Source: Hydrolagus colliei
Lineage: Eukaryota
Reading direction: 5' to 3'
Length of the DNA: 64,000 nt
Assembly (NCBI GenBank): GCA_035084275.1
Contig: CM068771.1
Coordinates: forward strand, 2,170,001 to 2,234,000
This document shows positions 12,006 through 63,190 of this stretch, piece by piece (positions within the stretch are counted from its first letter, which is position 1; each line of letters opens with the position of its first letter). A model generated the notes under the pieces. It did no database searches. It was not told where the DNA came from and saw only the letters and a program-made list of their open reading frames with translations. A program made the position numbers and the translations under genes.

Positions 12006-14288
12006 TCTGTAGTGTTCACAAGTGTGAAACACTGTCATTGAGGCAGAAGGAATACTTAAACAATAGTTAGTAGGATAGTTGGGGAGTTCGCGTATAGTAT
12101 AACAAAATAACCCTTGCATTTGTTATAGCGCCTTTTCACGTCTTGGGAATATTGCAGTGTTTCACAGGATACACTTTCAAGTGGATCAACAGTATATTTT
12201 TTGGTGAAACATGGCAGCCAATTGCGCACAGCAATGTACCACAAACAGCAATCCAGCTATGGATTGAGTGAGTGACCAAATTATTATTATTAATTTTGAA
12301 CGGATTATTGGCCATTTGAAAACTACAAGCTATTTGTCTTAACAACCGTGATTCCTACTTACCACAGTGTAAAACAGCGTGGAGGGAAATATAACAAAAT
12401 ATACTTGGAAAAAATATAACAAAATATCAGGGAAGGTTTGTACACTGACATGGTCATTTCATGTTCCTTCGGATTCTGAGGCACAATATGATTTGTACTT
12501 AAACAAACAGGCAACTTTCAGATCCATGTGAGAACATCTGAAAGGTTGGAGGTTTTGCTTCTACAGCGTATCAATATGTTTTTCTGCGATTTATCCTTCA
12601 AAGTAACCAAGTTATCAAGAGAAACAAAAGTGCATTGTTTGCGCTTAGACCAGTGTTGCTCAATTGCGTCCACCCCTTGTGAATTTTCCTTCATAGTCTC
12701 ATCACAAGCATAGAAGCATAGCCCCCCCCCCCCCCACACTCTCCCTCCCTCTCTCTCTGAGCATCTTTCCTAATGTATCAGGAACTGAGCTCACACCCTC
12801 AGAGTTGACACTTCAGAACATATCAAACCGTCAGCTCCTTTCACTCAGCAGTTTCCAGCCTTTAGCCTCTTTGCCCCCATCCTTTGGAACTCCATCCCAA
12901 TAGTCCCAATTTCCCTTGCTCCTTCCCTTGTCTACTTCCAATTTCTGGTGTGTGCTCTACTAGGATTTAGACTGGACGGACGAGAGTACACAGACCACAC
13001 CTGTGGTACAAGGCTGTTTCCCAATCCCTGAGGGCGAAGAGTAGAAGACAGAGCAAGGAGACTGATTCTTGCTGTTAAACAGTTAGAGTGATGAGCTATG
13101 ACAAAATGACTAAGATAATCTAGGAATATCCAGAATCATCATTTAAAAAAACCATCTCATTGATTGTGAAACAACAACAACAAAATTACATTTATAGAGC
13201 GCCTGTCACATTGGGAGGACTTCCCGAGGTGCTGAAACAGACATACCTAGAACTAACTGTACATGGTCGATTGCAAATAGAAACCACAAATGCGAATCAG
13301 ATCACAGAGAATTTGCATTTGTTATGTTGTGGGAACCAAAAATCCAATGCATATATTCCTAAAACTTTACATTTCACTCTAGGAAGCCTCATATCAACAT
13401 ATCATAATAATAATAATAATCCTTGCTTTTGATATTGTGCTTTGCACATCTTATTGACGTCTCACAGCGCTTCACAGAATATACTGTAAAATGAATTGAC
13501 TGTATATTTGTGAGCGAAATGCAACAGCCAATTGTGCACAGCAGTGCCCCACAAACAATTGTGGATTGAAATGACCAATTTTTTTATCGTTTTTTTTAAT
13601 GGATTATTATTAGGATTATTAGTATGCACTCTTTCAACACATCTTTGCCCAAGCATTCATTTTACATTCAAGAAGGAAACAGAGGTTCTGAGTTAAAATT
13701 CAATTGCTTTGTTTAGCGCGCTTAAAAATGAGAAGTCTTAGGTTTGATTCCAGAGTTGGGAGAAACATTGCATAGGTTTCCTTACTCCATACACATACCT
13801 CTATTAACTTACCATAGAATAGGAACCAGGTTGTTAGTCAATTGGCGGATCAATTTCCCAGGAGTCACGAACCATCCCAAAATGTACAATCAAATAATAA
13901 TGTGTTCACTCAAGCCTTAACTGTGGGACATTGCTTTGGGCAGTTGCTTACCAGGTTTTTCCTACAAAATACAGTCAATTAAATTTGTACTGCATCCTGT
14001 AAAGAGTTTGAGATATCTCGAAGATGTGATTAGGCAAATGCAAGGATTATTGTTAATATTTACAGTTTGCTATGGAAGAGGGAGGTCAACTCTCTATGTG
14101 TTGAGTTGAAGGACAGTGAGATTAATGTGTGTGTACATTGAGTCAGATCTTCTTTCATTGACTTGAGTGGCATTTAACCCAGAAAACTGCTGCCGTTACA
14201 CCCCTCCTGAAAACACCCACCCTTGATCCCTCTAATCTCTCTCACTACCATCCCACCTCCCACTTGGATTACTCCAACACAGTCAAGT

Positions 14289-16220: not shown

Positions 16221-16559
16221 NNNNNNNNNNNNNNNNNNNNNNNNNNNNNNNNNNNNNNNNNNNNNNNNNNNNNNNNNNNNNNNNNNNNNNNNNNNNNNNN
16301 NNNNNNNNNNNNNNNNNNNNNNNNNNNNNNNNNNNNNNNNNNNNNNNNNNNNNNNNNNNNNNNNNNNNNNNNNNNNNNNNNNNNNNNNNNNNNNNNNNNN
16401 NNNNNNNNNNNNNNNNNNNNNNNNNNNNNNNNNNNNNNNNNNNNNNNNNNNNNNNNNNNNNNNNNNNNNNNNNNNNNNNNNNNNNNNNNNNNNNNNNNNN
16501 NNNNNNNNNNNNNNNNNNNNNNNNNNNNNNNNNNNNNNNNNNNNNNNNNNNNNNNNNNN
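16221..16559. other. Assembly gap (N run)
   Basis: N characters. Confidence 1.
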
Positions 16560-17880: not shown

Positions 17881-18744
17881 AGATGCTGATGGGAGCCCAT
17901 CGGGATGGCCTCGATCCTATTGATGTTCCCCTGTACAAAGTTAGCACTCAATAATAGTAATAATATTGTACTAATAGTAATCCTTGCATTTGATATTGCG
18001 CCTTATCTCGTCTTGCAAGAGGTCTCAAAGAGCTTCACATGATATACATTGAAATGACTGTATATTTTGTGGATGAAACACGGCATGCAATAGCTCACAG
18101 CAGTGTCCCACAAACAGTCATGGATTGAAGTGAAACCCTGGTCCGTGCCTTTGTCACCTCTCGGCTGGACTATTCCAATGCCCTCCTCGCCGTTCTCCCC
18201 CACTCCGCAATCCACAGAGTCCAGCTCATTCAGAACTCTGCCGACCGCGTTCTCACCTGCAGCAAACTTCGCTCCCCTATTACCACAGTCCTTGCCAGAC
18301 TTCACTGGCTCCCTGTCCCCGAGAGGATCGACTTCAAGATCCTCATCCTTGTCTTCAAATCCCTTCACTCCCCCACCTCCCTGACCTCTCTCCTCATACC
18401 AGCTCCCGTTGCCTTCGCTCCACTGGGTCTGGCCTCCTCCATGTCCCCCCGAATCCTCCGCTCCACCCTCGGCGGCCGTGCCTTCAGCCACTAAGCCCCG
18501 AGGCTCTGGAACTCCCTTCCTCACTACCTTTGCCTCGCCCCCTCTCTTCCCAGTTTCAGGTCCCAGCTGAAGACCTTTCTCTTCGACCGCGCCTTTGGTC
18601 ACCTTTCTCCCCCTGCCCCTGGCTCGGTCCCGGGATCCGCTATTGTGAGGCGCTCTGAGACGCCGTCCGGCGTGGAGGGCGCAGCATAAATCAAAGTTGT
18701 TGTTGAAGTGACAAATGTATCATTTATTATAATTTCCTTTGAAG

Positions 18745-21150: not shown

Positions 21151-22157
21151 CCGGTTCGGAAGGGGGTTCAAAGAGGAATGGCGGGAAGGGAAAGACTCGA
21201 GACTCTGTACACTGTTGAGATATACTAATATGAAGCAAAATTATAAATGGATAGCTATTGAAACATTACTGATACGAATTACAATCATGAAAATGAATAA
21301 CTATGATTAGCTGAATTAAAATGGCAGAAACAACCATTTTGCACTCAGTCTGACCCAAGCTGGTTTGTGAAAGAAAATCAGACAGTCAGTTGGGATGTAA
21401 TGACAAAGGGAATGGCAGACTTGAGACGGGAGAAGACTGCCACAAGCTGATAACATTGCATTCGTTGTACAACATCAACAACAACAAAATTACATTTATA
21501 GAGTGCCTTTCACGTATAAAAACTGAGAAGGAGCAACTTATCCTCCTGTAAATATCTGCTCACCCGATAACTTGTTCTCCCAATTAGAGACAGACACTGG
21601 GCTTGGGAGGAAGGGAGCTGTCTGTATTGAGAACTGGTGGGCAGTTTTGCTTTTATCTATAACGAACTGATCAGATAAACAGATGTTCGTACAAGGATGT
21701 GTAATGGTCGAATACGAGAGGCAGATCCTCGGGGGCAAAAAGGTATAAATCGAAGTTGTTGCTGTTGTATAACTGCCTTGGTGTGGAGTGGTTGAGTAGC
21801 AGACCCAGCCGAGGGAAGACACACAGAGACCATTGCGACTGACTGCTCCGAAACTGGTGGTATAATTTTGTTACTTGTAGTGACATTATTATTGTACCAG
21901 TTTCTTGTGTTTTACTTTGATTAATATATGCAATTGGCTGCTGACAAAAACTGACCTGCCTGAAGTGCTCTATATATATATATATATATATATATTCAAG
22001 TTGTCGTTTTTGACACAATCCTTGACAGTAGTTATTGTGAAGCATTTAGAATGGTGTTTTGATTTGATCAGGTGCTGTACAAATGCAAGGATTAATTCTG
22101 AGTTGGTCAAACGGCGAAGGAAACTTGCTTAGACAGATATTTATTTTCTCCCATCAG

Positions 22158-23060
22158 CACCCAAAGTGCACGAGTCTCGCCCTCGCTGTAACACTGCTTA
22201 CTGGTGCCAAACTCCTTCAGAAACGTAGCAGAAGACTTCACAACACACCAGCCACGCAATCAGCTTGCAGCGTAAATGTTTCTTCAAAGCAGAACGAGGG
22301 ACCGGGCTCTATCGCACCTTCTGTTGACGGAGAGGTGTGTACGCCCACGGGATCTGCGCAACGTCACCAGCGATCGATCTCTGGCGAGGGGCTGTACCAG
22401 TGTGCGCAATGTGGAAAGAGTTTCACTCGTTCGGGGCACCTCATGGTCCACCAGCGATCGCACACGGGCGAGAGGCCCTATAAGTGCGGCGAATGCGGGC
22501 AGAGCTTCACGCAAGCCGGGCACCTCCAGAGGCACCGGCGGTCGCACACCGGAGAGGGGACGCACGTGTGCGCCGAGTGCGGGAAGAGTTTCACGACGTC
22601 GACCAACTTCCACATCCACCAGCGGTCGCACACGGGGGAGAGGCCGTACGTGTGCGCCGACTGCGGCAAGGGTTTCACCACCTCGGCCGTCCTCCAGCGG
22701 CATCGGGGGTCACACGCGGCCGAGAGGCCGCATCGGTGCGCCGAATGCGGGAAGGGTTTCGTGCGCTCGGGCGACCTCCAGAGGCACCGGCGCTCGCACA
22801 CGGGAGAGAGGCCGTATGCGTGCGTGCAGTGCGGAAAGAGTTTCACACAGTCGGGGACACTCCAGATCCACCAGCGGTCGCACACGGGAGAGAAGCCTTA
22901 CACGTGCGCGCAATGCGGGAAGAGTTTCACCGAGTCGGGCAACCTCAAGGTACACCAGCGATCACACACGGGGGAGAAGCCGTACCACTGTGCTCGTTGT
23001 GGGAAGAGTTTCGCAGAGTCGGGCAACCTCAAGGTACACCAGCGACTGCACACAGGGTGA
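22158..23060 (+). CDS. C2H2 zinc-finger protein, main exon with 8 tandem fingers
   Basis: Eight CxxC-x12-HxxxH units with HTGEKP/RP-type linkers, GC3-rich codons, ttttctcccatcag acceptor, TGA at 23058-23060. Confidence 0.9.
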
Positions 23061-28090: not shown

Positions 28091-29016
28091 CTAAATTTCC
28101 CCGACCACGTATCCCAAAATGAAACAGTAGGTGTCGTCCGATTGGCTGTGACGGACGCCCACATCGACTCGCTCCCCGGGGGGGCCGGTGGTGTAGACCC
28201 CCTCCCAGCGTCCGGTCCCTGCAGCGGAGGGGCGGAGCAGAGTGAAACCCCTCCCTCGAACACACACCTGGTGCGAGCCGGGCAGGCGCAAAGCGAAGCG
28301 GACGGTGGAGCGAGGCTTCAAGAGCCCATCGACCGGCTCCATCACTGAGTAGGTCTCCCTCCAGTCGTGGTAGAGTTCGGGGAAGGGACGGGGGTTGGCG
28401 GGCGGGTCGTCGCACGCCAGGAGATACCGGCAGAGAGGAGTGAGGGAGTCTCCCTCTCTGCCCGGCTCCCTGCGGCACACGCTCAGCAGGTAGACGCCTC
28501 TGCCGGGCAAACGGACGTCGAGATTCACCCTGTCGCCGTCGCGCGACATTCGGACGTTCTGGAGGTGGGTGAGGTCGCCCGAGGGGACGGCGTCGTCCGC
28601 GTGGAGCAGACCCTGGATCTCCATCTCCCGGCTCAGCAGAAACGTGAGTCGTGCCGAGCCATCTCGCGACCAGACGAGGGGTCGGGAGTGCGAGGTCTCG
28701 GACAATCCGCGCAGCACAGACAGCCAGTTGTGACCAAGGGCCGAAGGTGGGTGTTTGGGGAGAGTCAACGACGGCCGTTGGCGTCTGCTGCAGATCAGGA
28801 AGTCGCAAACGATGGCTAATTGCCTCCTGACGTCTTCCTGACGTCCGGCGAAGATCTCCAGGCGGAACAGACCCGGCCTGGGGGGGTCCAGGGTGAGAGA
28901 CATCCCTCCCCGCGTCAGCGAGAGAATCCCACAGTCCTCAACCCCCCACAGACGATAGGAGAAAACAATGCTTTTCTCAGTGCCCTCCACACATACCTCA
29001 CCCATCCGCTCGCCAT
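28091..29016 (-). CDS. KY: KY-like protein, terminal exon (C-terminal beta-sandwich repeats); orthology untested
   Basis: gttacag acceptor in phase 1; GC-rich frame to TAA; aligns by eye to the KY C-terminus (GRWEGVYTT...YCFILGYVV). Confidence 0.85.
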
Positions 29017-29226
29017 CTGTAACACACACACACACACACACAAGGGAATCACTATCATTATTGATAATAATGATCGTCGTGTTCGAGGTATTCGTTCAAT
29101 CTTTCAATCATCTTGCACTCACTCGGGTGGGCGGACAGGCGGGGGGGGAGGGAGGGAGGGAGGGCGAGCGAGCGAGTGAGTGAGTGAGGGACTGAGGCTC
29201 CCTCACTCAGTCACTCAGTCAGTCAC

Positions 29227-41703: not shown

Positions 41704-42390
41704 ATGTTCAACAACAACAACAATTTACATTTATATAGCGCCTTTCACGTCGGGAGGACGTCCCAAGGCGCTAAACAAGAGGCGTGTGACCCGAGCTGGG
41801 AGGGGAGTGTTTGGGAAGGGGTGAAACACGAAGGGGAGGTCAAAGAGTTCGGGGGGTGGGAACAAAAGGCCCGATCGAAGAGGAAAGTCTTCAAATCGGC
41901 CTTGAAAGAGGAAAGGGAAGAGGCGAAACGGAGGGATTGAGGGATGGCATTCCATAGGGTGGGAGCGGAGAAACTGAAGGCCCGGCCTCCGATGGTGGGG
42001 CGGTTCGGGCGGGGGGCTTGGAGCAGGCCAAGTCCTGTTGAACGGAGGGTTCGGGTGGGCGTGTAGGGGGAGAGTAGATAGGTTAAGTAGGATGGGGCAA
42101 GGCCGTGTAAAGCCTTGTAGGTGAGGACGAGGATCTTAAATTCGATCCTCTGGAGGATGGGGAGCCAGTGGAGACGGGCGAGGGTGGGGGTTATGTGGTC
42201 ACGGAGGCGGGTGCGGGATAGTACACAGGCTGCAGAGTTTTGGATGGTCTGCAGCCTATGAATGGAGGAACTGGGGAGGCCGACTAGGAGAGAATTTCCG
42301 TAGTCCAGCCGTGAGGTGATGTACGCGTGCACGAGTGTTTCAGCAGCGCGGGGGGTGAGATAGTTGCGGAGCCTGGCAATGTTGCGCAAA
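41704..42390 (-). mobile_element. Relatively young L2 3' end with open frame
   Basis: LRNIARL...SRLDYGNSLL...HWLPILQRIEFKIL to the tail. Confidence 0.9.
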
Positions 42391-42950
42391 GTCTTTCTTG
42401 CAACTAGTATCGCAGTTAACTCCTTTATCACTTCTCTTCTTCCCTGTATTACTCTCTCTCTGTGCTCCACCCTACTCTTTTCCCTTATATTGGAGCATTG
42501 TGATATTTTGAAACGTTAAATTATTTCAAGCTTACATCTGATTAGACCACTTTTTATGGCGGAAGTTGTCTCAATGTGTATCATACATTCTCAAAGTGTA
42601 GTGAATGACTTGTAGGCAAACGTGGCAGCTGTTTGCAGACAGAGATGTTCTGTGAGCAGTGAAACTGCCACCAAATTACAACTGTCTGGCTTCTCTCTGA
42701 CCGAATGTCACCACTACCAAACTCAGCTGTCCTCGGTTTCGCTCTGTCCCATCTTATTCTGTATTGAAATCTCCATTCAACAGCCGATTGTGTTCAGCAG
42801 TGTCCCACAAACACTCAAGGATTGAGAGACCTAATTATTATTGTTTTTGCTTGAGGGATTATTATCAGGCGTGTGGAGTAAGGAAATTGGCCCAAGGTTT
42901 TGCCCGGAGAGGGAGGAGCTGTGCCTGAGCTGTGGCAGCCGATACCGTTT

Positions 42951-43509: not shown

Positions 43510-43860
43510 AGACAGTGAATCACATGGAAACTGAGGTAAATCCACATCGCCGTTAATGTGTTAGACCTGGCAGATTCTCAGCGGCTCAGAATTTTTCCCG
43601 CCATCGCTCCCAAAAGGATGGACGAGAGGATAAAGTTTCCCCAGTCAAAGTTTGGGTGTAAGTGAGGAGATGAGACATGTTATCAGCGGTGTAAAATGAC
43701 ACCTGTCCCCCTTCATAGCCCAGGTAAACTCCGACCTTCCTGGGTCTCATTGTCAGGGGCAGGCGGGTGGGAGGTGATGTCACAGCCTCATAGACCCCGT
43801 TCCTCATCCACAACCCCCAGACCCCAGTCTCTGTTGACCAGATGATTGGTTGTTTCCTGT
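43510..43860 (-). pseudogene. Truncated, frameshifted SPRY (B30.2) fragment with 3' UTR homology
   Basis: GVWGLWMRNGVYEAVTSPPTRLPLTMRPRKVGVYLGYEGGQVSFY; +1 frameshift at TGKLYPL; lacks PRY. Confidence 0.85.
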
Positions 43861-44810
43861 GGCCTAACCCCTGAGTAACCCTGTGACTCCATCTCCCCCA
43901 TTCTGGTGTGACTCCATTGGCTCCCCCATCGCCAGAGGATTCAATTCAAGATCCTGGTCCTCACCTTCAACGCCTTCCATGGCCTCACCCCCCCTTACAC
44001 CTGAGACCTCCTAACCCACTACCAACCTGCGCACCCCCTCAGCTCAGCAGGCTCCTGTCTGCTCCACCTTCCCCGAACCTCCGACCCCACCATTGGCGGA
44101 CAAGCCTTAAGCCACTGTGCCAAGAAACACCACTCCATCCCACAGTCCCTCCACCTCGCCACCTCCCTGGCCACCTTCAAGTCCCGCGACAAGACCCACC
44201 TCCTCGACAGTCCCATTGGTCACTCCAAATGCCCCCTTTCCCTCCAGCCTCCCTGTGGGGCTAGTTCAGGTAAGAGTTGGGGAAATGGGACTAGTTGGGG
44301 TATGAATGGGGGAGTGGGGGCCGGTTGGGGTAAGAGTGGGGGCAGTGGGGGCTGGTTTGTTACTGTATCACAGACTGGGTTGAATGGCTTCCTCCTTGTG
44401 CCTGAGGTCAGGTTGGATGATCCTATGCCTGTAGTACCGCGTTACCGTCCACAGGAGGCGCTGTGTGAGCCCAACAGCCACTGCAGTCACACTGTCACCA
44501 GCGCCCTCTGCTGGCGGCGGGACAACATCACTGCAGTTGATTCTAACCCTCTGATGGGGATCAGTCACCAGCTCCCGGGTCCTAGTGCCCATCCCTTGAC
44601 AATACTTTGTGTTGTTTCTCTCTCACTCCACTCTCTCTCACCGTCTCACTACACTTTGTGCTGTTTCTCTTCCACTGTGCCTTTGGTCATCTTTCTACCC
44701 CTGGCTCAGTCCTGGGATCCGCTATTGTCAAGCGCTCTGAGACGCCTTCCAACGTGGAGGACGCTATATAAATAAAAGTTGTTGTGGTTGTTGTTGTTTT
44801 TCTCTCTCAG

Positions 44811-45346
44811 CTCCGGCCTCTCTGACTCTGGATCCTGACACAGCCCATCCCCAGCTCATCCTGTCTGAGGACCTGACCAGTGTGAGACTCGGAGACACAT
44901 GGCAGCCGCTCCCTGACACCCCAAAGAGGTTTAGTGTCTGGCCCATTGTCCTGGGGTCTGAGGGCTTCACATCAGGGAGACATTACTGGGAGGTGCAGGT
45001 GGGGAAGAAGACTGAGTGGATTGTGGGATTGGCCAGAGAGTCTGTCAACAGGAAACAACCAATCACATGGTCACCAGAGGAGGGGGTCTGGGGGGTGATT
45101 CTGGTGGACGGGGCCTATGTGGCTCTGACGTCACCCCCCACCCCCCTGCCCCTGACAGTGAGACCCGGGAAGGTGGGAGTTCACCTGGACTATGAGGGGG
45201 GACAGGTGTCAGTTTACAACGCTGATCACATGTCTCATCTCCACACCTTCACCAGCACTTTCACTGAGAGACTGTATCCTCTATTTTGTCCCTTTCCTGA
45301 CGAGGACAGAAACAACTCAGAGCCGCCGACAATCTGCCGGTTATAA
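44811..45346 (+). CDS. PRY-SPRY (B30.2) terminal exon, intact frame
   Basis: tctctctcag acceptor in phase 1; [13 protein letters not shown]...[13 protein letters not shown]...[12 protein letters not shown]...LYPLF; no upstream TRIM exons found. Confidence 0.8.
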
Positions 45347-49882: not shown

Positions 49883-49927
49883 TCAGGCCGGCTCCTCCAG
49901 TCTCTGATCCTCACTCACTCCAGGTTC
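49883..49927 (-). CDS. MHC class I candidate last cytoplasmic exon (EPGVSEDQRLEEPA*)
   Basis: tttttgttctcag acceptor in phase 0; could instead be a 9-nt micro-exon (EPG|GTGAGT). Confidence 0.4.
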   Translation of the reverse strand, partial: EPGVSEDQRLEEPA

Positions 49928-50668
49928 CTGAGAACAAAAATACAACCAAACTCCTCATTAGTCTCAGGTTGTTTTGCCCATAAATACATAACCAATTCAC
50001 TTCAAAGTATATTCTGTGAATTGATTTGAGACGACTAGAAGACATGAAGAGCTCGGTATCAAATACAAGGATAATTATTATCATCTGCCAGGCAATGTGA
50101 CCCCCGAGCTGTCCATCACTGCTCGTGTCTGATACACATAGAAACCTATCACCGTGATCATACGGGTAACTGATGAACGTGGGAACCTATACCTGTGCTT
50201 AAGAGTTTCCAAGGCACATCAGATAGTTGTACATGTGAATGCTCTGGCCTGCTCCCCGTCACCCGCCTACCCCATAGTTGGCGGCTGGGCCTTCAACATT
50301 TCTGCCCTGATCCTGCACGACTCCATCCATGATTCCCTTCTCCTCGCTCTCTCCCTTGCCTCCTTCTCCCCTGCGTCTCAAAAACCTCCCGTTTGACCCA
50401 TCCTTCGTCCTCCCTGCCCTCCACCCTCCCCAATACTGACCCACTACTCGGGTTCAAATCTCTGACTGTCCAGTGGCTTGGGACGACCTCCCGATGTTGA
50501 AGGCCCTGTATCATTGTGATTTTGACACCAACACACAAACTCTCCCTGTTTCTGGGATGGGGTGCGCATCTTGCATATGTAATTCCCGAGAGTGTTAGGT
50601 GCAGATGAGCAAGAGTGAAACCTTGGGGAGCCAGCAATGTGCATTGGGGGTAACTGCTGGAGTCTAAC

Positions 50669-51309
50669 CACTGAACTAAAATAAGACCTGGAAGGATTAT
50701 CGCCCACACAAAGTGTCGCCACCGATTGTCCGAGGTCACGTGATATCCGCCATTTTGGTTGGTCCTCGACGCGACTCATCTCATCTCATTTCATGAAGGT
50801 ACATGTCTCTAGGTTTACATTCACTGTTTTTGTATCATGATCCTGATACATGAGGTGAATTTAGGTAAAGCTCGTCATGATATTCGATTCATCCATTTGA
50901 CTGTTAGTTTTTCTTTGAATTTCAGATTAATCTTCAGTATTTTTTACAGTCTGAATCATACTCGTTTTGATCAAAAATTCAGGAACGCTTTGTCACCAAT
51001 GATCAATTTGACATTCAGTTATTACATGACTGAATTTAACCTCTGCAAATTCCTCCAGCAATCCTTAAATTAATTTGCAGTGAATTATATTTTTATTACA
51101 TATTTATTATTTTTTAATTGTTTATCTGTTTTTCATTTAGGGAGGGGCACACCCATTTATTTCTTGCGTATGCAAAACTTCATCATTTGTCTCCTCCATA
51201 ATCCTCAACAATGTATTCGAGGACTACGCAATATGGCGGCTTGACGGTGACACCTCGGTCTGTGCATTGTGTGTAGAGATAATCCTTCCAGGTTTTTTTT
51301 AGTTCAGTG
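50669..51309. mobile_element. Non-autonomous DNA transposon, 641 bp, CACTG termini, 8-bp TSD
   Basis: AGTCTAAC at 50661-50668 and 51310-51317; TIR cactgaactaaaataagacctggaaggattatc, imperfect to ~100 bp. Confidence 0.9.
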
Positions 51310-51482
51310 AGTCTAACCAGCTAAACACATAGAGCTCATCTGCTAAGAGGGATGTCTCTCAAGCTTCCCCTTACTTATCCAGTGATGATCCAGTCACAGC
51401 CCAGCCCTGATCCTCACAGCAGGATAGTGTTGGTTAGTGACTAGTGATCACATGAGGTTGTGTGGCTCTGACCAGCTCTTAC

Positions 51483-51520
51483 CTGTGGCTGAACATCTGA
51501 TGCTTGGCTACTGTCATCAC
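51483..51520 (-). CDS. MHC class I cytoplasmic exon 2 (DDSSQASDVQPQ)
   Basis: Phase 1 to 0; ggtaacag acceptor, CAG|GTAAGA donor. Confidence 0.65.
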
Positions 51521-51828
51521 CTGTTACCAGAAACAGATTAAAGATGAAGTCAGGGTGAGACAAACAATATCAACATGTTACCCAGACAATATCTACATGT
51601 CAGACAGACAGACAGACAGACAGACTATATCCATGTGTTACACTCAGACAGTTGGAGAGAAATTGGCTGAATGTCACAGTTTCAAAGAGCCAGACAGCAA
51701 ACTCCTGTACAGTACAGTACAGAGCTTTGAAAGTGAGGTGAGCATAGAATATGTCACACGTGTTGCACACACGTCTACTCGCAGAGTGTAACCTGACGCT
51801 GTGTTCAGACTCACTGTGATGTACTTAC

Positions 51829-51861
51829 TGGATGGACGGCTGTACAGGTGAGGGCCGGGAC
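51829..51861 (-). CDS. MHC class I cytoplasmic exon 1 (PGPHLYSRPS)
   Basis: 33 bp, phase 1-1; tttatttacag acceptor, A|GTAAGT donor. Confidence 0.75.
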
Positions 51862-52225
51862 CTGTAAATAAACAGGTGTGAATTACAACAGACCAGTGTC
51901 ACACAGACACACACAGACAACAGCCAGTTACACACAGAGAGTTACAACACTCAGTCACACATATCACAACCCTTCTCTCACACACACATACACAGTAACA
52001 CCCAGTCATAAACACACACAGAGAAAACGATTTGTTCTCACACTCGCGGATAACATCCATCACAGATACACAGAGACAAACAACACTCAGTAACACAGGG
52101 CCAGTGATGTGATAGTTATCACTGATGATACAAAGATGGCTGAGGTTGAGTTACTGACTTAACGACTCTGACATGATTCCCAGGGGGATCACAGCCCCAC
52201 CTCCCCTTCTCCCCCATTTCCTCAC

Positions 52226-52357
52226 CATTTTTCTCTCTATTTCTTATCCAGACGAGAATCACAACAACAATCCCGACAACAGACAACAGGAGGGTTCCGA
52301 TGATCAGGCCAATGATCCAGGAAGCAAGAACGGCCGGAGTTCTCTCTGTTTTCCCAT
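52226..52357 (-). CDS. MHC class I connecting peptide and transmembrane exon
   Basis: 132 bp, phase 1-1; WIIGLIIGTLLLSVVGIVVVILVW followed by IRNREK. Confidence 0.9.
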
Positions 52358-52928
52358 CTGTTTGGAGTGAACAGAAAATAAACTTTAGCTAAGATCCTGA
52401 GAGCGAGAACATAGACTCTCATTAATATCCTGTTTAGAGAAGACAGTGTAATCAACATCTTCTCTGCTGTGGCTCTGACCTCTTCATGCTTCCCGGCCTA
52501 GCCTTTACCTTACAATTGCTGATATGTACATCAGGTTCAACCCTCAGATATTCTTCCACCCCCACATCCGGTCCCTTACCAGCACCGCTTCCCTCCACCT
52601 CCTTCATATACTTACCCTCCAACTGTACCTCTCACTAAACACAACCACAACCCTTGTCTATGTTTTCATCAACTCCAACATTGACTGTGTCAATTCACTC
52701 CTCACCATCTGCCCAGATCCACTATCCAAGAAATCCAACTCATTCTGAACTCTAATTCGTGCATAATTACCCTCTCTAAACTCTGTACACACATCAACTC
52801 GCTGAGGCCATATGATTCCCTAACATCCTCCAACATGAAAGACGCTATAGAAATGTAATTTTGTTGTTGCTGTTATCAGAGAACAGCTCGACTTCAAGAT
52901 TCTCACTCACAGTTGTGGTTGATCTTAC

Positions 52929-53207
52929 CCCACGGCACCTCCATCGCCCCCTGGAGGCTGCTGTGCTCCACCAGACAGGAGAAGCCTTGCCCCTCCATGG
53001 AACCCGTCTCCAGCTCCATCTGCTTCATTATCTGAAAGGTGCCATCGTGGTTGGGTAATACACCACTGGACACCACCTCGTGGACAGTGTTGCCGTCCCT
53101 TGTCCAGGTCACCTCGATGGGCCGCGGATAGAAGCCAGTGACAAGACAGGAGAGAAGGGCTCTCCCCGCCAGGTCCCTCCTGTAACTGACTGAGACGTCA
53201 GGGCGGC
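52929..53207 (-). CDS. MHC class I alpha-3 (Ig C1) exon
   Basis: 279 bp, phase 1-1; LSCLVTGFYPRPIEVTW...LPNHDGTFQ...FSCLVEHSSL. Confidence 0.95.
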
Positions 53208-53319
53208 CTGGGGAGGGGAGCACAGTCACACACAGCTCAGCACTGAGCCCACTCTGACACAGCAACAATTAATCATATAACAAAATATTACTGTATTATA
53301 TATAAAAACAGTCACTCAC

Positions 53320-53595
53320 TCTGTCTCTGGAACATGAATTTTGAATGCTGATAATGGTTCTCCATCCAAGTAAGACAATCATTCTCCAGTTCATGTTTCC
53401 AATGCTCATTCATGACTCTGTCACTGTCCAGTTTCTCTCTCAGGATCTGAGCCTCAGGAACAGCGGAAATCCATCTCAGCTCATTTTTATCGAAGCTGAT
53501 AAAATCCTTACCATCAAATGCCACTGAGATGTGTCCATGTGTTCTGCCGTCCTCACTCACTGCACAGCTATACATCACCTGGGCATAGTGAGCAC
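53320..53595 (-). CDS. MHC class I alpha-2 exon
   Basis: 276 bp, phase 1-1; QVMYSC...AFDGKDFISFDK...LENDCLTW. Confidence 0.95.
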
Positions 53596-53819
53596 CTGAA
53601 ATAGTCATTCACAGCCATTGTGATCAGTGTCTCTTTCTCTCACCACATTTCTGTTACACACACAAACTCCCCCTCTCACACTCGCGTACAGTAACAACCT
53701 TAACCACATAGTGTCGCTCATCCAGGGTAGTTCACCAGAGCACTCCACACTGGTGAGCATGATGCTGGGAGATGACTGTACATATGGTCCAACAGAAAGA
53801 TCTTCAGGCATGAACTGCA

Positions 53820-54070
53820 CATAAGACCATAGGAATTAGCAGGAGTAGGCCATTCAGCCCCTCGAGCCTGCCGCGCCATTCGATAAGATCGTGGCTGATC
53901 TTCCGACCTAACTCTAATTACCTGCCCTATCCCCATATCCCCTAATCCCTCTATTGTTAAAAAAAATCTATCATTCTCAGCCTTGAAAATGTTGAAGGAT
54001 TGAGCATCTGCAGCTTTCTGGGATTAGTGAATTCCATAAATTGACTACTCTCTGAGTGAAGAAATGTTTC
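53820..54070 (-). mobile_element. CR1-type 3' end
   Basis: cataagaccataggaattagcaggagtaggccattcagcccctcgag reverse tail pattern. Confidence 0.7.
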
Positions 54071-54299
54071 CTCATCTCTGTGGAGAAGGAGGGGGAAGTC
54101 AAAGGGAAAGAGAAAGTTCGGGGTGCAGTGTCTAAAAATATGGTCTCCGATGGTGAAGTGAAAGGCATGAGGGACATGTAGGTGGCCGGGGCCAGTCAAG
54201 TGGAGTCAGAGCTTAATGGGTTGTGGGGTAAGCAGGTCGGAGATGTAGGAAAGTGCCAGTGTATTAAGGGATTTCAAGGTGAGTGGATCTTGCAATCAA

Positions 54300-55560
54300 T
54301 CCATTTGGATATATTTGGAGTCATTGCAACCTGGCTAGAACTGGTGTGAGAGATGTGCACAGTTTAGTATGGGTGAGAATGCGAACAGTGGAGATGGGAT
54401 CAGCTGGATCCTGTGTATGTTGGAGCTCAGAAGACTGAATAATGGCATTTGAAATACTCGAGTCAGGAGGGAAGCAGAACTCCTCAACGGTCAGATGTGG
54501 AGATGTAAGGATAGTGCAGATGAAACCTTGAGTTGAGGTTTGCAAGTAAGTGTTCGTTCAGCATTGTGTTGTCTACATCAGGATCACAAATGTGGAGGTG
54601 GTCTGAGGAAGAGGGCATTTGTGAGGGTCTCAGTGGAAAGCTTTTTTGAAAGTCAGACAAAGATGGTGGAGGGTTGGAAGAGGGGAGGGTTATATAGAAA
54701 GAGAGGGAAATGAGGAAATGATCTGAGATGCAGATTGGACACATCAAGTGTGTGAAAGAGGTCGAGGAAGTGGCCACAGTAGTTTAAGTGGACGTGAGGT
54801 TTAGTTTGGTGAGGAGAGCATTTAAGTTGGAGAAGATGGAGCAAGAAGAGTTTAGGTGAGGGTTGGAATCACCCATTAGAATCAAGTGTTCATTGCAAAG
54901 ATGGAGGAATTGTAGCGGAAGGCGATGTCAGTGATGAGGGGACCAAGTGGTTTGAGAGGGCAAGAAATGGAGAGGACTTTGAAGTCGAGGGAGGGATGCT
55001 GCAAGATTAGGTGTTAAAAAGAGGAAAAGCAGCCAGAGGAATAGAGCGAGGTATGTATGGGAGACCAGGGCAACCTCACCCTTGCGTTTGAGTTGCGGAT
55101 ATGGTGAAAGGTGTAGCCAGAGTTGGGGGGAGGGCAGAGGCGTCAATCAGGGGACAGAGTGACTGGGGCAATGGGGCAAGACTTTTATTATCCCAAGAAT
55201 ATCAATTTTCTCACCCAGGATGCGGTCATGGATCGAGAGGGTTTGATATTTGGGTGGTATTGGGAGCAGACATTTTGGAGGTGAATGTGAGTGAATGAGC
55301 TGGTGGAGGAAGGTTTGAAAGGAGGGTAGGTTGGGTTTCAGGCTGTGGGAGAGAAATTACTGTGGAAGTGGGTGTCTTTTGGAGTATTGCGGTATAGGGG
55401 ATATGGTGTTGGGCAGAGTGGGTGATGGGGCAGTCGGGGTGGCTGCTTTGAGACAACTAACAAACAGTTGGAGCCAAAATGAGCTCGGGTGAGAATCCTT
55501 AGGCTCTAGAGGGTTAATGGTGGTGTCCAGTACAGAGAGAAAGGAAGGAGGGCAGTGGGA
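54300..55560 (-). mobile_element. Degenerate L2 endonuclease region in the class I alpha1-alpha2 intron
   Basis: GEVALV and ISDHFLISLS remnants. Confidence 0.6.
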
Positions 55561-55726
55561 AGAAGGACGATTAGGAATAGTGGAGTGTGGAGATGAATTC
55601 AGGGCATGATTCACAAGAGCAAACAGAAACTCACTGACTCCCTCCCTCGCACATTCAAAAACACATGAACACAGACACACACAATGAAAAGTGCTGGATG
55701 TTTACAGAATATATCAAACCACTCAC

Positions 55727-55978
55727 CTCTAGTAATATTCCTTCTCGTCATCACGTAAAACATATTCTCCTTTATGAGAATACGATCTTCCTCTATACCT
55801 ATGGATTCGTATTGTTCTCTAACAATCCGCTGTAAACTCGATGTCCAGGTGACAAACCTCCGATTGTTGCTGTCGTAGTGATCCACTTCAACATCATCCA
55901 CCATCACCGCACGGCGAAATTCTAGAGACTCTCCGCCTCCTGACACTAACGTGTGGAATATTCTGAACACGTGAGGCT
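55727..55978 (-). CDS. MHC class I alpha-1 exon
   Basis: 252 bp, phase 1-1; PHVFRIFHT...MVDDVEVDHYDSN...MTRRNIT with the N86-type sequon. Confidence 0.9.
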
Positions 55979-56096
55979 CTATCAGACACAAACACACAGA
56001 CTGACATGTAACAGTTCACTCTGAACACACGCTGAGCACACACACACACACACAGCTCACACTGTACACACTGTACACACAGCTCATTGTGCAGTA

Positions 56097-57127
56097 CAGG
56101 CCCGTACGCAGGGGGGGTGCGTCGGGTGCGTAGGCACCCCCCCAAATTATAAAAGATCCACATTTTCCGGGGTAGAGAATTGTATTTTTATCAAATTTAA
56201 ATACCAAGTAACTTTATTGAACATTTGTGTAACAATTAATTCTTCTAAACTATGTATTACTTATAAATACACATCTTTGAATGATTTAGTATTAATATAA
56301 AATTACTCGCACACCAGAATTGGCGTCTACCCAAAACATACCGCGTCGATAGACGATCTAGTCAATGTTTACGCGGTGAGTCTGTGACTCACCGCGCAAA
56401 CATAGGCGCGCGCCAAGACTCAAATCCATCCTCGTTTGGAAATCATCCCGTATACAGCCACAAAGGTAGCACCACTTCTAGAAGTTAAAATCATCTTTTC
56501 ATCTGATCACCGTAAGTAAAAATTACTCAAGTTTTGAGAGGTGTGACTGTAATGCTAGCAAACAATGACAACATATTTACAAGCTTCTGAGAAATTAAAG
56601 CTTTTGAGAACCCAACAAAAAAGTTATATGTGTCTGGACGGAAATGCCTATCTTTAAAAAAGATACTCATGGACGTAGACCTATGCTTTAGGGCCTATGT
56701 CTACGTGGTGTGTCAATTGGAAATCATCCCGTATACAGTCACTACATAAAAAGGTAGCACCACTTTGTGGAAGCTGAAATCATATTTTAATCTGATAAAT
56801 GTAAGTAAAAATGACTTAAGTTTTGATAGGCGTGTTTCTGAAATATCATGTTTCTTGTTTTGTCTTGATTATCACATTTGATTTATATTATTCAAAATGT
56901 ATTCCTGTAATTAAAAATTGCTTTTAGAGACATCCACTGGCATGCAAAAAAAATGACCGCAAAAATGTGTAAAATATGACCTCAAACTGTGTAAAACGTC
57001 GGAGCCTCGAGGGGGCTTTGCCCCCTTCACCCCCGCCAGGGGCCCTCGTGGGCAGCCCCCAAGCCGCTGTTGGTCCCATCACTAGCAATTCGCACCCCCC
57101 CCATTAAAAATCCTGCGTACGGGCCTG
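56097..57127. mobile_element. Non-autonomous DNA transposon (hAT/Tip100-like ends), 1031 bp
   Basis: Perfect 16-bp TIR caggcccgtacgcagg; flanking CAGTA repeat; internal ~105-bp direct repeat (~56435 and ~56718). Confidence 0.85.
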
Positions 57128-57336
57128 CAGTATACACACAGGGAGAGAGGGGGGAGAGCAAACTCACACAACTGTGATAGACCAAGAAAAGGAGCCCTGG
57201 TGCAATCTCTGTCCACATCAACCCCACGCCTTCCCTCAGGCCCTCCTCACCTCCCCCAGTTACTCAACCCTAATGACGGAGCCACTCCCCCACCTTCCCC
57301 AGCCCCTCACCCCATCAACCAGCCCCTGTTCTGCAA

Positions 57337-57975
57337 TTATCTCACCCCCCACGCTGCCGAAACGCTCGTACATCACCTCACGGCTGGACTATGGGAACTC
57401 TCTCCTTGTCGGCCTCCCCAGCTCCTCCATTCACATGCTGCAGGTCATCCAAAACTCTGCAGCCCGTGCACTATCCCGCACCCGCCTCCGTGACCACATA
57501 AGCCCCACCCTCGCCCGTCTCCACTGGCTCCCCATCCCCCAGAGGATCGAGTTCAAGATCCTTGTCCTCGTTTTCAAGGCCTTACACGGCCTTGCCCCGC
57601 CATATTTAACCCATTTACTCTCCCCCTATAAGCCCACCCGGACCCTCCGTTCAGCAGGACTTGGCCTGCTCCAAGCCCCCCGCCCGAACCGCCCCACCAT
57701 CGGAGGCCGGGCCTTCAGTTTTTCCACTCCCACCCTATGGAATTCCACCCCCACAATCCCTCCACCTTGTTTCCTCTTTCAAGACCGGTTTGAAGACTTT
57801 TCTTTTCGACCGTGCCTTCTGTTCCACCCCGAACTTTTCGACCTCCCCTATGTGTTTCACCCCTTCCCGAACACTCCCCTCCCATCTCGGGTCACACGCC
57901 TCCTGTGCAGCGCCTTGGGACGTCCTCCCCACGTGAAAGGCGCTCTATAAGTCTAATTTGTTGATGTTGTTGTTG
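57337..57975 (+). mobile_element. L2 3' end
   Basis: ITSRLDYGNSLL...HWLPIPQRIEFKIL to the tail. Confidence 0.9.
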
Positions 57976-57979
57976 CTCT

Positions 57980-59520
57980 CATCCTCACACCCTCACCTAG
58001 CTCCTCACTCCCTCCACCAGCCACTCTTCCCTTCCCAGCTACTCCCCACCCTCCCCAGCCATTCGCACCTTCTCTCACCCCACAACCCCTTGTCCAACCC
58101 CAACAGCCCGTCCCCACCTCTCACCCCTCCACTGGCACCTCCCCGGCCACTCTTTCCCCTCACTCAGCCACTTACACCATCCCTCAGCAGACCCACAAAC
58201 CTACCAACACACCCTCAGCCACTCAACAACCCCTCATCTCATCAAAAACCCACTTCAGACTCTTACGAAACACTTCAACACACTATCAGCCCCTCGTCAA
58301 CACATCATCAAGTCCCTGAACACAACTCAACACAATGACACACCTTCAAAATAGCCTCAGCACCTCAACAACTCTCTCAACCCACACTCAGTCCCTCAGC
58401 ACACCATCATCCCCATCAAGACCAGCCTTAACCACCCAACACACCCTCAATCCCTCAACACACCACTCAACATCACCTCATCCCACAAACATAGCCTCAG
58501 CCTCTGAACACACCCTCAATAACCCCAGTCCATCATTACACCCTCAGCCAGTCAACACAACCTCAGCACCACAACACAATCTCAAACTGGGGAGCCCTGT
58601 AGCTCAGTGGGTAGAGCACTCATTTTGCAAGCAAGAGACCTCGGTTCAATTCCAGTCAGAACAAAATCTTCAGCAAGTCTCCTTACTCCATATGCCTGTA
58701 AATAATCGCTCCAATTTTTTTTTAATTGGTCATTTCATTCCACAGCTGTTTCTGGGAAACTCTGTGGGCAACTGCCTGCTGAGTTTCACCTCCAAATATA
58801 CGGTAAATTTACTTTATACCATCTTCTGTGAAGCGTTCTGAGACGTCTAGAATATGTAAAAAGTGCTATAGCAAATCAAAAGGATTATTACTAAATCCAC
58901 TCAACATGCCCTCAGCCACTCAACATACGCTCATATCCTCAACATAGCCTCAAACTCCCTTCCCCTCAACACCCCTTCAGCATAACCTCATCCCTTCAAA
59001 ACAGCCTCAGCATCTCAATACCCCCGTCAACATACCCTCAGCAAACCCTCATCCGATCAAGTCCCCCATCAACCCCACAACAAATTGCTCAACACACACT
59101 CAGCTGCTCAACACAACCTCAACACAACCTCCACCCCTCAACATATCCCTCAAAACACCTCTCATCCAATCAACACAACCTCAGACACTCAACACACACC
59201 TCAACACACATCCAACATCTGCTTTTCTCCCCCTTAAATCCAACCCTTCGCCCAACCACTATCCATCTCAACCCCTTCCCCCTCCGCCATGAACAAACCT
59301 CTTCATCCCCCCACGAATACTCCCCCTCATCCCCCCATTCCCCCGGCACCCCCCCCCCACTCCCTCAGCCAACCCACTCCCCAAGCCACGCTCCAGCTCA
59401 ACCCCCAACCACCCTCTCTCACCCACTATTCTCCTCCACCAAACCATCACCGTCAACCATTATACCCCTCACCCCCTCCCCACTCAGCCCCTCCACTCCC
59501 CCAAATAAGAGAATAATATC
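57980..59520. repeat. C/A-rich degenerate repeats (ctcaacacaccctcag-like) with an embedded SINE at ~58590-58875
   Basis: Visual periodicity. Confidence 0.75.
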
Positions 59521-59553
59521 AAACAGTAACAGTCAGAGTCTGTGGCCACTTAC

Positions 59554-59620
59554 TGTCCAGCCCCCCACACACAGACAGGAGGACAGGGAGAGCCATCAGA
59601 GACCTTATCATCCTGGCCAT
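59554..59620 (-). CDS. MHC class I leader exon (MARMIRSLMALPVLLSVCGGLD)
   Basis: ccagccATGG start, hydrophobic core, A|GTAAGT phase-1 donor in frame with alpha-1; not in the ORF track. Confidence 0.85.
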
Positions 59621-59724
59621 GGCTGGTCACTGACACTGACAGTCTGTCTGTCCAGCCAGACCCTCTGCTCCCCACCACAGCCTCTCAGCTCTAACCCCAA
59701 CACTGTCTCTGATCAGACTCTCAC

Positions 59725-59743
59725 TGACTCACTCACAGCCAAT
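59725..59743 (-). promoter_or_regulatory. Class I proximal promoter: Y-box-like ATTGG and TGAGTCA
   Basis: CCAAT at 59739-59743 and TGACTCA at 59725-59731 on the plus strand, ~110-120 bp upstream of the ATG. Confidence 0.45.
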
Positions 59744-60172
59744 GGGAGGATCTCAGGAGCTGATCATAACCTGTCTCTGGGTAAAAGGCTCTGAGACAGG
59801 TTGTGATCTGTGGTTTCTCACTGTGTGAGTGAGAGAGTCTGTCTGTCTGTATGAGTGTGTACATGTTTCTCTGTCTGGATATGTGAGAGCGTATCTGAGT
59901 GTCTCTGTGTGTGCATTAGTGTGTGTCTGTGTGTGTGTGTGAGAGAGAGAGCCTATGTGTGTGTTCGTAGCTGTGTCTGTGTCTATCTGTGTCTGTCTGT
60001 GTATCTGTTTGTGTATCTGTGTCTGTCTGTCAAAGTTGAAGTTGTCCCAGAAGAAGTCACTGCATGCAAATGCCATTCTTGTATCTGTAGGAACTAAATT
60101 ACAAGCTTAACTCTCCCGTTTCTTTAACCGTTTTCAGTTGTTAATATGACATGAACATTAACGGCAGAAACC

Positions 60173-61774: not shown

Positions 61775-61830
61775 GCCACGCCCACACCGACACTGAGTCA
61801 CCAAACAAGGAAGTTAGACAAGGAAGTCTT
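61775..61830 (+). promoter_or_regulatory. TRIM proximal motifs (GCCACGCCC, TGAGTCA, two AGGAAGT)
   Basis: KLF/SP, AP-1 and ETS-type matches immediately 5' of the ATG. Confidence 0.35.
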
Positions 61831-61840
61831 GGAGATGAAA

Positions 61841-62251
61841 ATGGCTTCTAGAGATCAGGTTGAGAGTCTGACTGAGGAGTTAAACTGTCCAATTTGTCTG
61901 GATTTCTTTAATGATCCTGTGACCCTGGAATGTGACCACAACTTCTGCCGCTCCTGTATCACACGGAGCTGGGAAAAGCAGGAGACACACTCCTGTCCGG
62001 AATGTCGAAGGGTGATTCCAGGAACTAACCTGAGACGCAATCGTACGCTGCGTAATCTGACAGAAAAAGCTCGGAATCTGAGCCTGAATCTGACACAAGC
62101 TGACAAGAAGCTTCACTGTGAGGAGCATCAGGAGGAACTGAAGCTGTTCTGTGAAACAGACAAGAAACTGATGTGTGTGATTTGCAGAGATGCCCGAGAG
62201 CACAGAAACCACAGCTTCATCCCCATTAAGGAGGCCATTCAGGTCTATAAG
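61841..62251 (+). CDS. TRIM E3 ligase first coding exon (C3HC4 RING + B-box 2; TRIM39/RFP-like); alternative ATG at 61835
   Basis: CPIC...LECDHNFCRSC...CPEC; CEEH...LFCETD..LMCVIC...EHRNH; AAG|GTAAAA phase-0 donor. Confidence 0.92.
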
Positions 62252-62499
62252 GTAAAACACACCAGATTGTCAATTGTGCTTTTTTTTTCTTTTAAATGTG
62301 ATATCCCTCCACAGCCCTGGAGTCACCTCGAGTCACCTGAACTCCCTCACCCCCTCTGGCCTACCTCCCGCACTATCCTATCCTCCTCCCTCACTCTCCT
62401 CCATACAACCCTCTCCACTACTCTCGATTCACTTGCCCCTCTCACCTCCTGAACCGCCTCCTATTCGCAAATCTCACCTCAGTTCTCCAGTCAACTCCG

Positions 62500-63190
62500 C
62501 TGCTTCAAGTGTCAGGTCCGGGCCACCGAAGGCACCTGGATCAAATCTGGCCTAACTGTCAACCAGTAACCGGTGAATATATCTCCAAACCCATACGCAA
62601 CCTGGGCTTCAGGTACGACCCCCAATTACCTCTTAGCTGGACTACTCCTCCGTCCTCTTCGCCGGTCTCTCCTTCGCCACCATTCACAAAATCCAGCTCA
62701 TACAGAATTCCACCGCCCGACTTTTAACATGTGCCAAACTCCGCTCCCCGATTACCCCAGTCCTTGTCAGACTGCGCTGGCTCCCTGTCCAAGAGAGGAT
62801 CGATTTCAAGATCCTCACTCTTGTATTTAAACTCACCAATCCTCTGCATCTCACCACCTCTCTGACCTCCTCTCTCCTCCCAACAGTACCCGCTGCCATC
62901 GCTTCACCGGGTCTGGCCTCATCCCTGTCACCTGAATCCTCCGGTCCACTATTGGTTGTCATGCCTTCAGCCACTACGCCCAAGGCTCTGGAACTCCCTT
63001 CCTCACTCCCTTCGCCTCACCACCTCTTTTCCCACTTTCAGGTCTCGGCTACAGACCTTCCTTTTGATTGCGTTTTGGTCACGTTCTTCCCCCTCCCCGT
63101 TGCTCAGCCCCTGATCTGTTATTGGAAAGTGGTCTGAGACGCTGTCCGGCGTGGAGAGCATTATATAAATCCAAGTTGTGGTTGTTGTTG
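62500..63190 (+). mobile_element. Degenerate L2 3' fragment
   Basis: gaggatcgatttcaagatcctc core and tail ctgagacgctgtccggcgtggag. Confidence 0.75.

Follow-up and report, generated by a model that had tools for sequence, protein, structure and literature searches.

An apparently intact non-classical major histocompatibility complex class I gene of the chimaera Hydrolagus colliei, a divergent member of a holocephalan gene family

Among the oldest jawed vertebrates that have a major histocompatibility complex (MHC), no branch has been studied less than the chimaeras, and in the most recent genomic survey the holocephalans were called data-deficient (PMC10751288). In classical class I molecules eight residues at the peptide termini are conserved, namely Y7, Y59, Y/R84, T143, K146, W147, Y159, and Y171 (PMC4364491). 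For cartilaginous fish the nurse shark classical UAA has been identified as PDB 6LUP (PMC8236899), and CD1-like, lipid-binding UFA/UGA molecules of sharks are mentioned in a review (PMC12562908). From Callorhinchus milii, the elephant shark, a further class I family is already in the databases, uncharacterised, as the RefSeq proteins XP_042202285-XP_042202288 (scaffold MU250313.1) and the complementary DNA (cDNA)-derived V9KN34 'MHC class I antigen'; no paper naming or studying this holocephalan family was found in the literature searched. What is new is a divergent member of the family in the chimaera Hydrolagus colliei, encoded on the minus strand, from 59620 to 49883, of a stretch of 64,000 nucleotides (assembly GCA_035084275.1, contig CM068771.1, positions 2,170,001 to 2,234,000), which is called the window below and to which all coordinates refer if not stated otherwise. 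The sequence leads us to read it, with a probability of roughly 0.75, as an intact membrane-anchored non-classical (class Ib) heavy-chain gene of the holocephalan family, a reading which concerns the identity of the gene and not its ligand.

The gene was built from the three-frame translation of the minus strand between 49500 and 59800, in which open stretches with class I motifs were collected and their borders set by splice signals. Eight exons of 67, 252, 276, 279, 132, 33, 38, and 45 nucleotides are spliced in frame to a coding sequence of 1122 nucleotides for a protein of 373 amino acids, with 359 codons before the last exon. All seven introns have the form GT...AG, giving 14 canonical splice signals, and the first six junctions are in phase 1, the usual state in class I genes. 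Exon 1 (59554..59620; this and all following exons on the minus strand) carries the ATG and the signal peptide MARMIRSLMALPVLLSVCGGLD, ends in phase 1 before the donor GTAAGT, and was also located by tblastn with the gene model. Exon 2 (55727..55978) encodes the 84 codons of alpha1, in which the alignments place I7, R23-R24, Y59, R84, the sequon N86-I-T, and a deletion of three codons in the helix relative to C. milii. Alpha2, with 92 codons, is encoded by exon 3 (53320..53595), where C101, C164, L143, K146, L147, E159, and H171 were assigned in the same way. Exon 4 (52929..53207) encodes alpha3, an immunoglobulin (Ig) C1-set domain with its cysteine pair according to Pfam, which aligns with the C. 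milii family at 88% identity. A connecting piece, the transmembrane segment WIIGLIIGTLLLSVVGIVVVILVW, and basic stop-transfer residues follow in exon 5 (52226..52357), taken from the gene model and tblastn.

The cytoplasmic tail is distributed over three small exons. Exon 6 (51829..51861) has 33 nucleotides and encodes GPGPHLYSRPS, a layout that matches the peptides of C. milii V9KN34 and XP_042202287; exon 7 (51483..51520), with 38 nucleotides, encodes SDDSSQASDVQPQ and was assigned by comparison with the C. milii tails; and exon 8 (49883..49927), found by tblastn, contributes the last 14 codons EPGVSEDQRLEEPA and a TGA. The C. milii RefSeq protein XP_042202287 (370 amino acids) ends in ...KGPGTHQYNRPSSEESGQVPDDQPQEPGASEERRMEERS and the chimaera protein in ...NGPGPHLYSRPSSDDSSQASDVQPQEPGVSEDQRLEEPA. 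The build GPG.H.Y.RPSS..S.Q..D.QPQEPG.SE....EE.. is common to the chimaera protein and the C. milii family, and the last exon with its flank shares 88.6% aligned DNA identity with the C. milii locus. Since the same build is found in V9KN34 and XP_042202287, the two small cytoplasmic exons and the candidate last exon can be regarded as the normal tail of the family.

Pfam recognised the protein with both the MHC_I (E 5.9e-18) and the C1-set (E 1.6e-18) models above the curated cut-offs. A search of the PDB matched some 1,500 class I chains; those at the top are classical, with an E-value of about 1e-41, a match far beyond chance. The determinants of the fold are kept: two disulfides (C101/C164 and the alpha3 pair), the N86 sequon, the FDGKDF loop (118-123), the C1-set alpha3 domain, the transmembrane segment, and the tail. 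Searching with the gene model by tblastn gave only this one class I gene in the whole window. It spans 9.7 kb, its introns being filled with repeats; the copies of C. milii take up about 3 kb. An earlier note on this DNA had proposed a complete, intact class I gene of 359 codons, or about 373 amino acids with a candidate last exon, and had listed both disulfides and the NIT sequon. The rebuilt exons, their GT-AG borders, and the Pfam matches bear out the complete gene, the last exon gains support from the C. milii tails and the DNA identity, and disulfides and sequon are in place.

The relationship to C. milii was obtained from searches and from trees. When the chimaera protein was compared with a collection of 5.8 billion sequences, the closest proteins were all from C. 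milii, with 57-73% identity, followed by elasmobranch class I-like proteins with 33-40%; a protein identical to it was not found in this collection. When 1.84 billion cluster representatives were scanned by phmmer, with the C. milii family member P0002 as query in place of the chimaera protein, only C. milii proteins had more than 50% identity to P0002, and all others had 42% or less. The identity of the chimaera protein to the C. milii members that join it in the tree is 65-73% overall; divided by domain, it is 40-51% in alpha1, 63-70% in alpha2, and 88% in alpha3. A maximum-likelihood tree of 46 ectodomains (LG+C20+F+G4) placed the chimaera protein in one clade with six C. milii members (support 100/100, stem length 0.68 substitutions per site), with the chimaera protein as sister to all the C. 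milii copies (100/97). The clade was recovered from alpha1 and alpha2 alone (100/100) and from alpha3 alone (99/98). The branch between the chimaera gene and C. milii is as long as that between P0082, a holocephalan-type transcript of a different class I clade, and its C. milii counterpart.

Chimaera and C. milii members are alike in exon and tail layout, in the triad L143-K146-L147, in the residues of the F and E pockets, in their alpha3 domains, and in a promoter block described below. They differ in that Y59 and H171 occur in the chimaera gene only, in that its alpha1 is three codons shorter, and in that its alpha3, 12% away, lies outside the pool of the six C. milii alpha3 domains, which are nearly identical among themselves. 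These sequence comparisons place the chimaera gene in a multicopy class Ib family, as a divergent member; up to now the family had been seen in no species but the elephant shark. The earlier note had suggested a divergent or undescribed lineage. Divergence and a family confined to holocephalans are what was found; the gene is not a new lineage by itself, because it is nested in the C. milii family with full support.

The residues at the groove were read in three alignments, one by phmmer against chicken BF2, one by MAFFT of about 130 class I proteins, and one by MAFFT L-INS-i with an HLA-A*02:01 ruler sequence that matches the HLA-A2 chains of the PDB exactly. All three agreed that three of the eight peptide-terminus anchors are kept in the chimaera protein, Y at position 59, R at position 84, and K at position 146. 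The other five are replaced, by I at position 7, L at position 143, L at position 147, E at position 159, and H at position 171, and the protein thus does not have the anchor set of a classical (class Ia, UAA-type) molecule. This loss is evidence against canonical peptide binding. The arginine pair R23-R24 sits on the second beta strand of alpha1, where position 24 lines the B pocket. Alpha1 is short, 84 codons versus 87 in the C. milii relatives, because three codons are deleted in its helix relative to these closest relatives, with the gap aligned near HLA positions 67-69. The five replacements, the retained K146 and R84, the 84 codons of alpha1, and an arginine pair on the beta-sheet had all been listed in the earlier note, which called the groove non-classical; the formal alignments, which do not show the anchors conserved, uphold this view and add Y59 to the residues kept.

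A pattern across the family emerged when the 36 pocket positions of HLA-A2, reportedly those given by Saper and colleagues in 1991, were set against the other 146 positions of alpha1 and alpha2 in seven members, the chimaera protein and six from C. milii. Entropy was 1.02 at pocket positions versus 0.50 elsewhere (Mann-Whitney p = 1.7e-5). The variation is concentrated in pockets A, B, and C, and pockets F and E are near-fixed: L143, K146, L147, Y80, F123, and W133 are common to all seven sequences, position 77 is N with K in two copies, and position 156 is W with C or L in two copies. Variation between paralogues thus falls on pocket positions pointing inwards, which is the pattern that ligand binding predicts. 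The chimaera protein has hydrophobic residues at 19 of the 36 pocket positions, HLA-A2 at 15, and the solved shark structure 9CH4 at 21; charged residues number 11, 8, and 5, respectively.

The divergence between chimaera and C. milii is uneven along the gene. Compared with two C. milii genes, the rate of synonymous substitution (dS) is 0.62-0.66 in alpha1, 0.35-0.39 in alpha2, and 0.08-0.09 in alpha3, and the ratio of nonsynonymous to synonymous rates (dN/dS) is 0.40-0.78 in each of the three domains. Nucleotide identity to C. milii is 87% over alpha2, intron 3, and alpha3, 77% in the regions of the leader and the transmembrane exon, and about 71% in that of alpha1. This mosaic fits the known homogenisation of the Ig-like domains of class I genes, whose lineages are defined by the binding region (PMC8010645). 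In C. milii itself two genes of the family lie tail to tail on the 49-kb unplaced scaffold MU250313.1, at scaffold positions 719-3642 (plus strand) and 5788-13606 (minus strand). The alpha1 domains of this pair have a dN/dS of 2.1 and their alpha3 domains are identical at synonymous sites, a contrast that points to diversification of alpha1 combined with a homogenised alpha3.

Upstream of the chimaera gene, 100-200 bp before the ATG, a proximal promoter block of about 105 bp (59716..59821, minus strand) is conserved, with 87% identity to the sequence upstream of a C. milii paralogue versus 48-56% in its flanks. By resemblance to consensus sequences only, the block contains a CCAAT/Y-box-like motif CCCATTGGC (59738-59746), a TRE-like motif GTGAGTCAGTG (59722-59732), and a RUNX-like motif GAAACCACAG within 59796-59817. 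The strict pattern of the interferon-stimulated response element had no match in the window, and a similar sequence, GTTTCACTTT near 60170, was dropped as it is not a consensus site.

Compared with classical class I molecules such as Gici-UAA*01 (PDB 6LUP), chicken BF2, and HLA-A2, the chimaera protein has the same fold, domain order, disulfides, N86 site, transmembrane segment, and tail, and differs by its three anchors out of eight and in that no antigen-processing gene was seen among the large open frames of the window. Against the chimaera protein nurse shark UAA scored 128.6 bits and chicken BF2 146 bits. The XNC genes of Xenopus (mhc1-uba) are alike in kind, being a taxon-restricted multigene class Ib family in which the groove is divergent and the alpha3 domain homogenised (PMC12562908, PMC8010645); they have no phylogenetic tie to the holocephalan family, and for some of them restriction of innate-like T cells is known.

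The tree of 46 ectodomains also contained three other chondrichthyan non-classical clades, here called A, B, and C, and the holocephalan family lies outside all of them. Clade A (support 100/99, seven to eight of the eight anchors kept) comprises the nurse shark 'nonclassical MHC class I antigen' QGX07421, C. milii V9KZF7, and the transcript P0082; we take it, provisionally, to be the UDA lineage of Almeida et al. 2020. Like the family it is a chondrichthyan class Ib lineage that is also present in holocephalans, but it has a long serine-rich tail and its seven to eight anchors contrast with the three of the chimaera protein. A RefSeq model of Rhincodon typus (P0320, XP_048472426) fuses a QGX07421-like class I gene of this clade with a second class I-like gene of another type that lies downstream. 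The model has the look of a read-through annotation, and from it the whale shark is seen to carry the two genes side by side. Clade B contains the solved shark structure 9CH4 together with skate and sawshark proteins and is presumably the CD1-like UFA/UGA lineage, a provisional name. It resembles the family in the pocket hydrophobicity of 9CH4 (21 versus 19 of 36 for the chimaera protein), and in it hydrophobic residues take the places of T143 and Y159; it differs in keeping Y7, Y59, W147, and Y171, in its low copy number, and in its occurrence in sharks and rays, not holocephalans. The multicopy 'F10-like' proteins found only in sharks (Hemiscyllium, Stegostoma, Rhincodon, Cetorhinus, Chiloscyllium, and Pristiophorus) make up clade C, for which we likewise assume, provisionally, the name UEA of Almeida et al. 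2021. As in the holocephalan family, multiple class Ib copies occur in one chondrichthyan subclass, anchors are largely lost, and a variable groove is combined with a conserved alpha3; the differences are an identity of about 35%, the absence of the alpha2 disulfide C101/C164 from the sampled members of clade C, the clade's retention of W147, and the lack of a supported common node.

Approximately unbiased (AU) tests rejected a union of the family with clade A (p = 0.033) and rejected neither a union with clade B (p = 0.33) nor one with clade C (p = 0.195); in the tree of alpha1 and alpha2 the family, B, and C fall into one weak group (75/52). The family is not UDA-like because of the result against clade A. 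An assignment to the multicopy UDA of holocephalans was discarded as well: the QGX07421 clade has holocephalan members of its own (V9KZF7 and P0082), and the AU test disfavours the joining. Of the cartilaginous-fish lineages that the earlier note had named, the comparisons covered the classical UAA (6LUP) and, under a provisional name, UDA as clade A.

As to function, a structure was predicted for the C. milii member P0002, which again stands in for the chimaera protein. The model has the standard open class I fold, with a predicted local distance difference test score (pLDDT) of 85 and a predicted template modelling score (pTM) of 0.76, and its best structural neighbours are classical molecules of chicken, duck, carp, and shark, chicken YF1*7.1, and MR1. 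These matches of a predicted model indicate an open-groove class I shape, not a class of ligand. The chimaera heavy chain would pair with beta-2-microglobulin, for which the retained FDGKDF loop and alpha3 fold are an indirect sign only, and would reach the cell surface through its transmembrane segment. Its groove would not hold ordinary peptides of 8-10 residues by their free termini and would hold another ligand, probably a more, or partly, hydrophobic one, of which one end may be common to the family (pockets F and E) and the other specific to each paralogue (pockets A and B). Different paralogues would then handle different ligands, and the complex would be read by T-cell receptors or receptors of the natural killer (NK) type. 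That the groove holds a non-canonical ligand is the functional reading we favour, at somewhat better than even odds. The earlier note had proposed a non-peptide ligand or a receptor-ligand role, which is an inference of the same kind. Several points weigh against it. The pocket assignment of positions 58-66 is uncertain because the exact placement of the deletion in alpha1 is arbitrary; the fold search with the P0002 model gives no distinction between classical molecules and relatives that bind lipids or metabolites; the pocket is rich in charge, so that the idea of a hydrophobic ligand is weakly founded; and a dN/dS below 1, averaged over long branches, is no proof of present function.

Three other readings of the function have to be weighed against a non-canonical ligand. 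The molecule might hold no groove ligand at all and itself be recognised, or bind a partner outside the groove, like stress ligands of the MIC/ULBP type, FcRn, HFE, or ZAG. The loss of five of the eight terminus anchors would suit such a role, the groove could be made narrower by the three codons missing from the alpha1 helix, and the window contains four exons for C-type lectin domains, a gene class that includes NK receptors. These exons, however, are 40-55 kb away with no functional link to the class I gene, transmembrane segment and tail conform to the classical type, the fold of the family model is that of an open-groove class I molecule, and the paralogues vary above all at the pocket positions that point inwards, which makes the reading rather improbable, roughly a one-in-five matter. 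Still less credit is given to a presentation of peptides whose termini are held unconventionally, as is the case for a small number of class I molecules whose anchors are substituted. Y59, R84, and K146 are kept and the nearest solved structures, by sequence as well as by fold, are classical peptide presenters; but Y7, T143, W147, Y159, and Y171 are replaced, three of them by residues incapable of the hydrogen bonds (I, L, and L), L143 and L147 are fixed throughout the family, and of the large open frames in the window none was recognised as a gene for TAP, PSMB, or tapasin. The least probable reading is that of an unexpressed or decaying copy still open by chance. Multigene class Ib families do carry many pseudogenes, the introns are swollen with repeats to 9.7 kb of gene compared to about 3 kb in C. 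milii, and the gene is not among the annotated proteins of the database. Eight open exons with 14 canonical splice signals, the retention of all structural residues, the conserved promoter block, and a dN/dS that stays below 1 in each domain along a long branch speak against this reading.

A further alternative concerns the lineage and not the function: the family could be the holocephalan orthologue group of a named elasmobranch lineage, either clade C, probably UEA, and/or the 9CH4 clade B, probably UFA/UGA. Since the family is found in holocephalans only and clades B and C in elasmobranchs only, their distribution is the one expected of orthologues split at the divergence of Holocephali and Elasmobranchii; unions with B and C were left unrejected by the AU test, the weak joint group appeared in alpha1 and alpha2, and the pocket of the chimaera protein is about as hydrophobic as that of 9CH4. 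On the other side no supported node joins the family with B or C, each clade has a stem of 0.6-0.8 substitutions per site, and identity to B and C in alpha1 and alpha2 is only 25-36%. C101/C164 are kept in the family and absent from clade C, W147 and Y7/Y59/Y171 are all present in clade B, a set that is not retained as a whole in the family, and the lineage names of B and C are provisional, drawn in part from the remark of a review and not from authenticated sequences. Orthology to a named lineage is accordingly considered unlikely, at about one chance in four. Equally tentative is the broader idea that the family may be an unnamed, holocephalan-specific class Ib lineage sharing its origin with the elasmobranch hydrophobic-groove lineages of the 9CH4/UFA-UGA type and/or UEA. 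If this were true, a non-peptide (lipid-like) presenting branch of class I would have existed in the ancestor that all cartilaginous fish share, and diversification in chimaeras would have taken place at the A/B-pocket end with the F-pocket end frozen.

The surroundings of the class I gene contain members of several other gene families. Just upstream of its promoter and divergent from it is a first exon of a TRIM gene with RING and B-box (61775-62449, plus strand), starting with MASRDQVESLTEELNCPICLDFF. On its other side a PRY-SPRY region (43589-45343) comprises a partial SPRY exon (43589-43945, minus strand) and a complete PRY-SPRY exon (44741-45343, plus strand). The four C-type lectin domain exons lie in tandem on the minus strand (2232-2726, 5345-5758, 7037-7528, and 8075-8566; Pfam Lectin_C with E about 1e-18 each), the last two being near-identical duplicates. 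TRIM/B30.2 and lectin genes are common company of class I genes. Further frames encode a C2H2 zinc-finger protein of 330 codons with eight fingers (22068-23057, plus strand), the best matches of which are generic zinc-finger proteins of about 50% identity, and a KY-like Ig-like domain (28094-29095, minus strand; PF23265, E 1.5e-21) with a GC content of 0.55, where long frames overlap on the other strand and in another frame. TAP or PSMB genes were not seen among the large open frames of the window, which is too short to exclude linkage, and for the same reason linkage to the MHC cannot be called from 64 kb.

Intron 1 is long partly because of an insertion of about 1 kb (56088..57136) bounded by terminal inverted repeats of 25 nucleotides, TGTGCAGTACAGGCCCGTACGCAGG and CCTGCGTACGGGCCTGCAGTATACA; it is probably a non-autonomous DNA transposon and not part of the function of the gene. 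The same intron has a tRNA-like head of a short interspersed element (58590-58670), GGGGAGCCCTGTAGCTCAGTGGGTAGAGCACTC...GGTTCAATTCC, in which ARAGORN called no tRNA. An interspersed repeat occurs in many copies, among them 57108-57947, 41748-42515, 18129-18491, and 62637-63134, with a frame reading ...RLDYGNSLLVGLPSSSIH.LQ.IQNSAAR.LS.T....HI.P.L..LHWLPI..RI.FKIL.L..KAL.G.AP.YL..., of which one copy was without a Pfam match. At the start of the window a reverse transcriptase fragment of a long interspersed element (3-755, plus strand; RVT_1, E 3.8e-21) is cut by the window edge, and a related inverted piece follows at 806-1165. The segment 16001-18000, which adjoins a run of N (16221-16559), has an extreme strand asymmetry (GC skew 0.84, AT skew 0.34), and its low-complexity frame of serine, leucine, threonine, histidine, and proline on the minus strand is probably a simple repeat.

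From the divergent chimaera member it follows that the class Ib family predates its expansion in C. milii, and fixed and free positions of the groove can be told apart from a second, independent sequence. The gene is also a concrete target for ligand discovery. Should the family turn out to be related to the lipid-binding or UEA lineages of sharks, it would help to date the presentation of non-peptide ligands; otherwise it would be one more case of class I genes forming taxon-restricted non-classical families.

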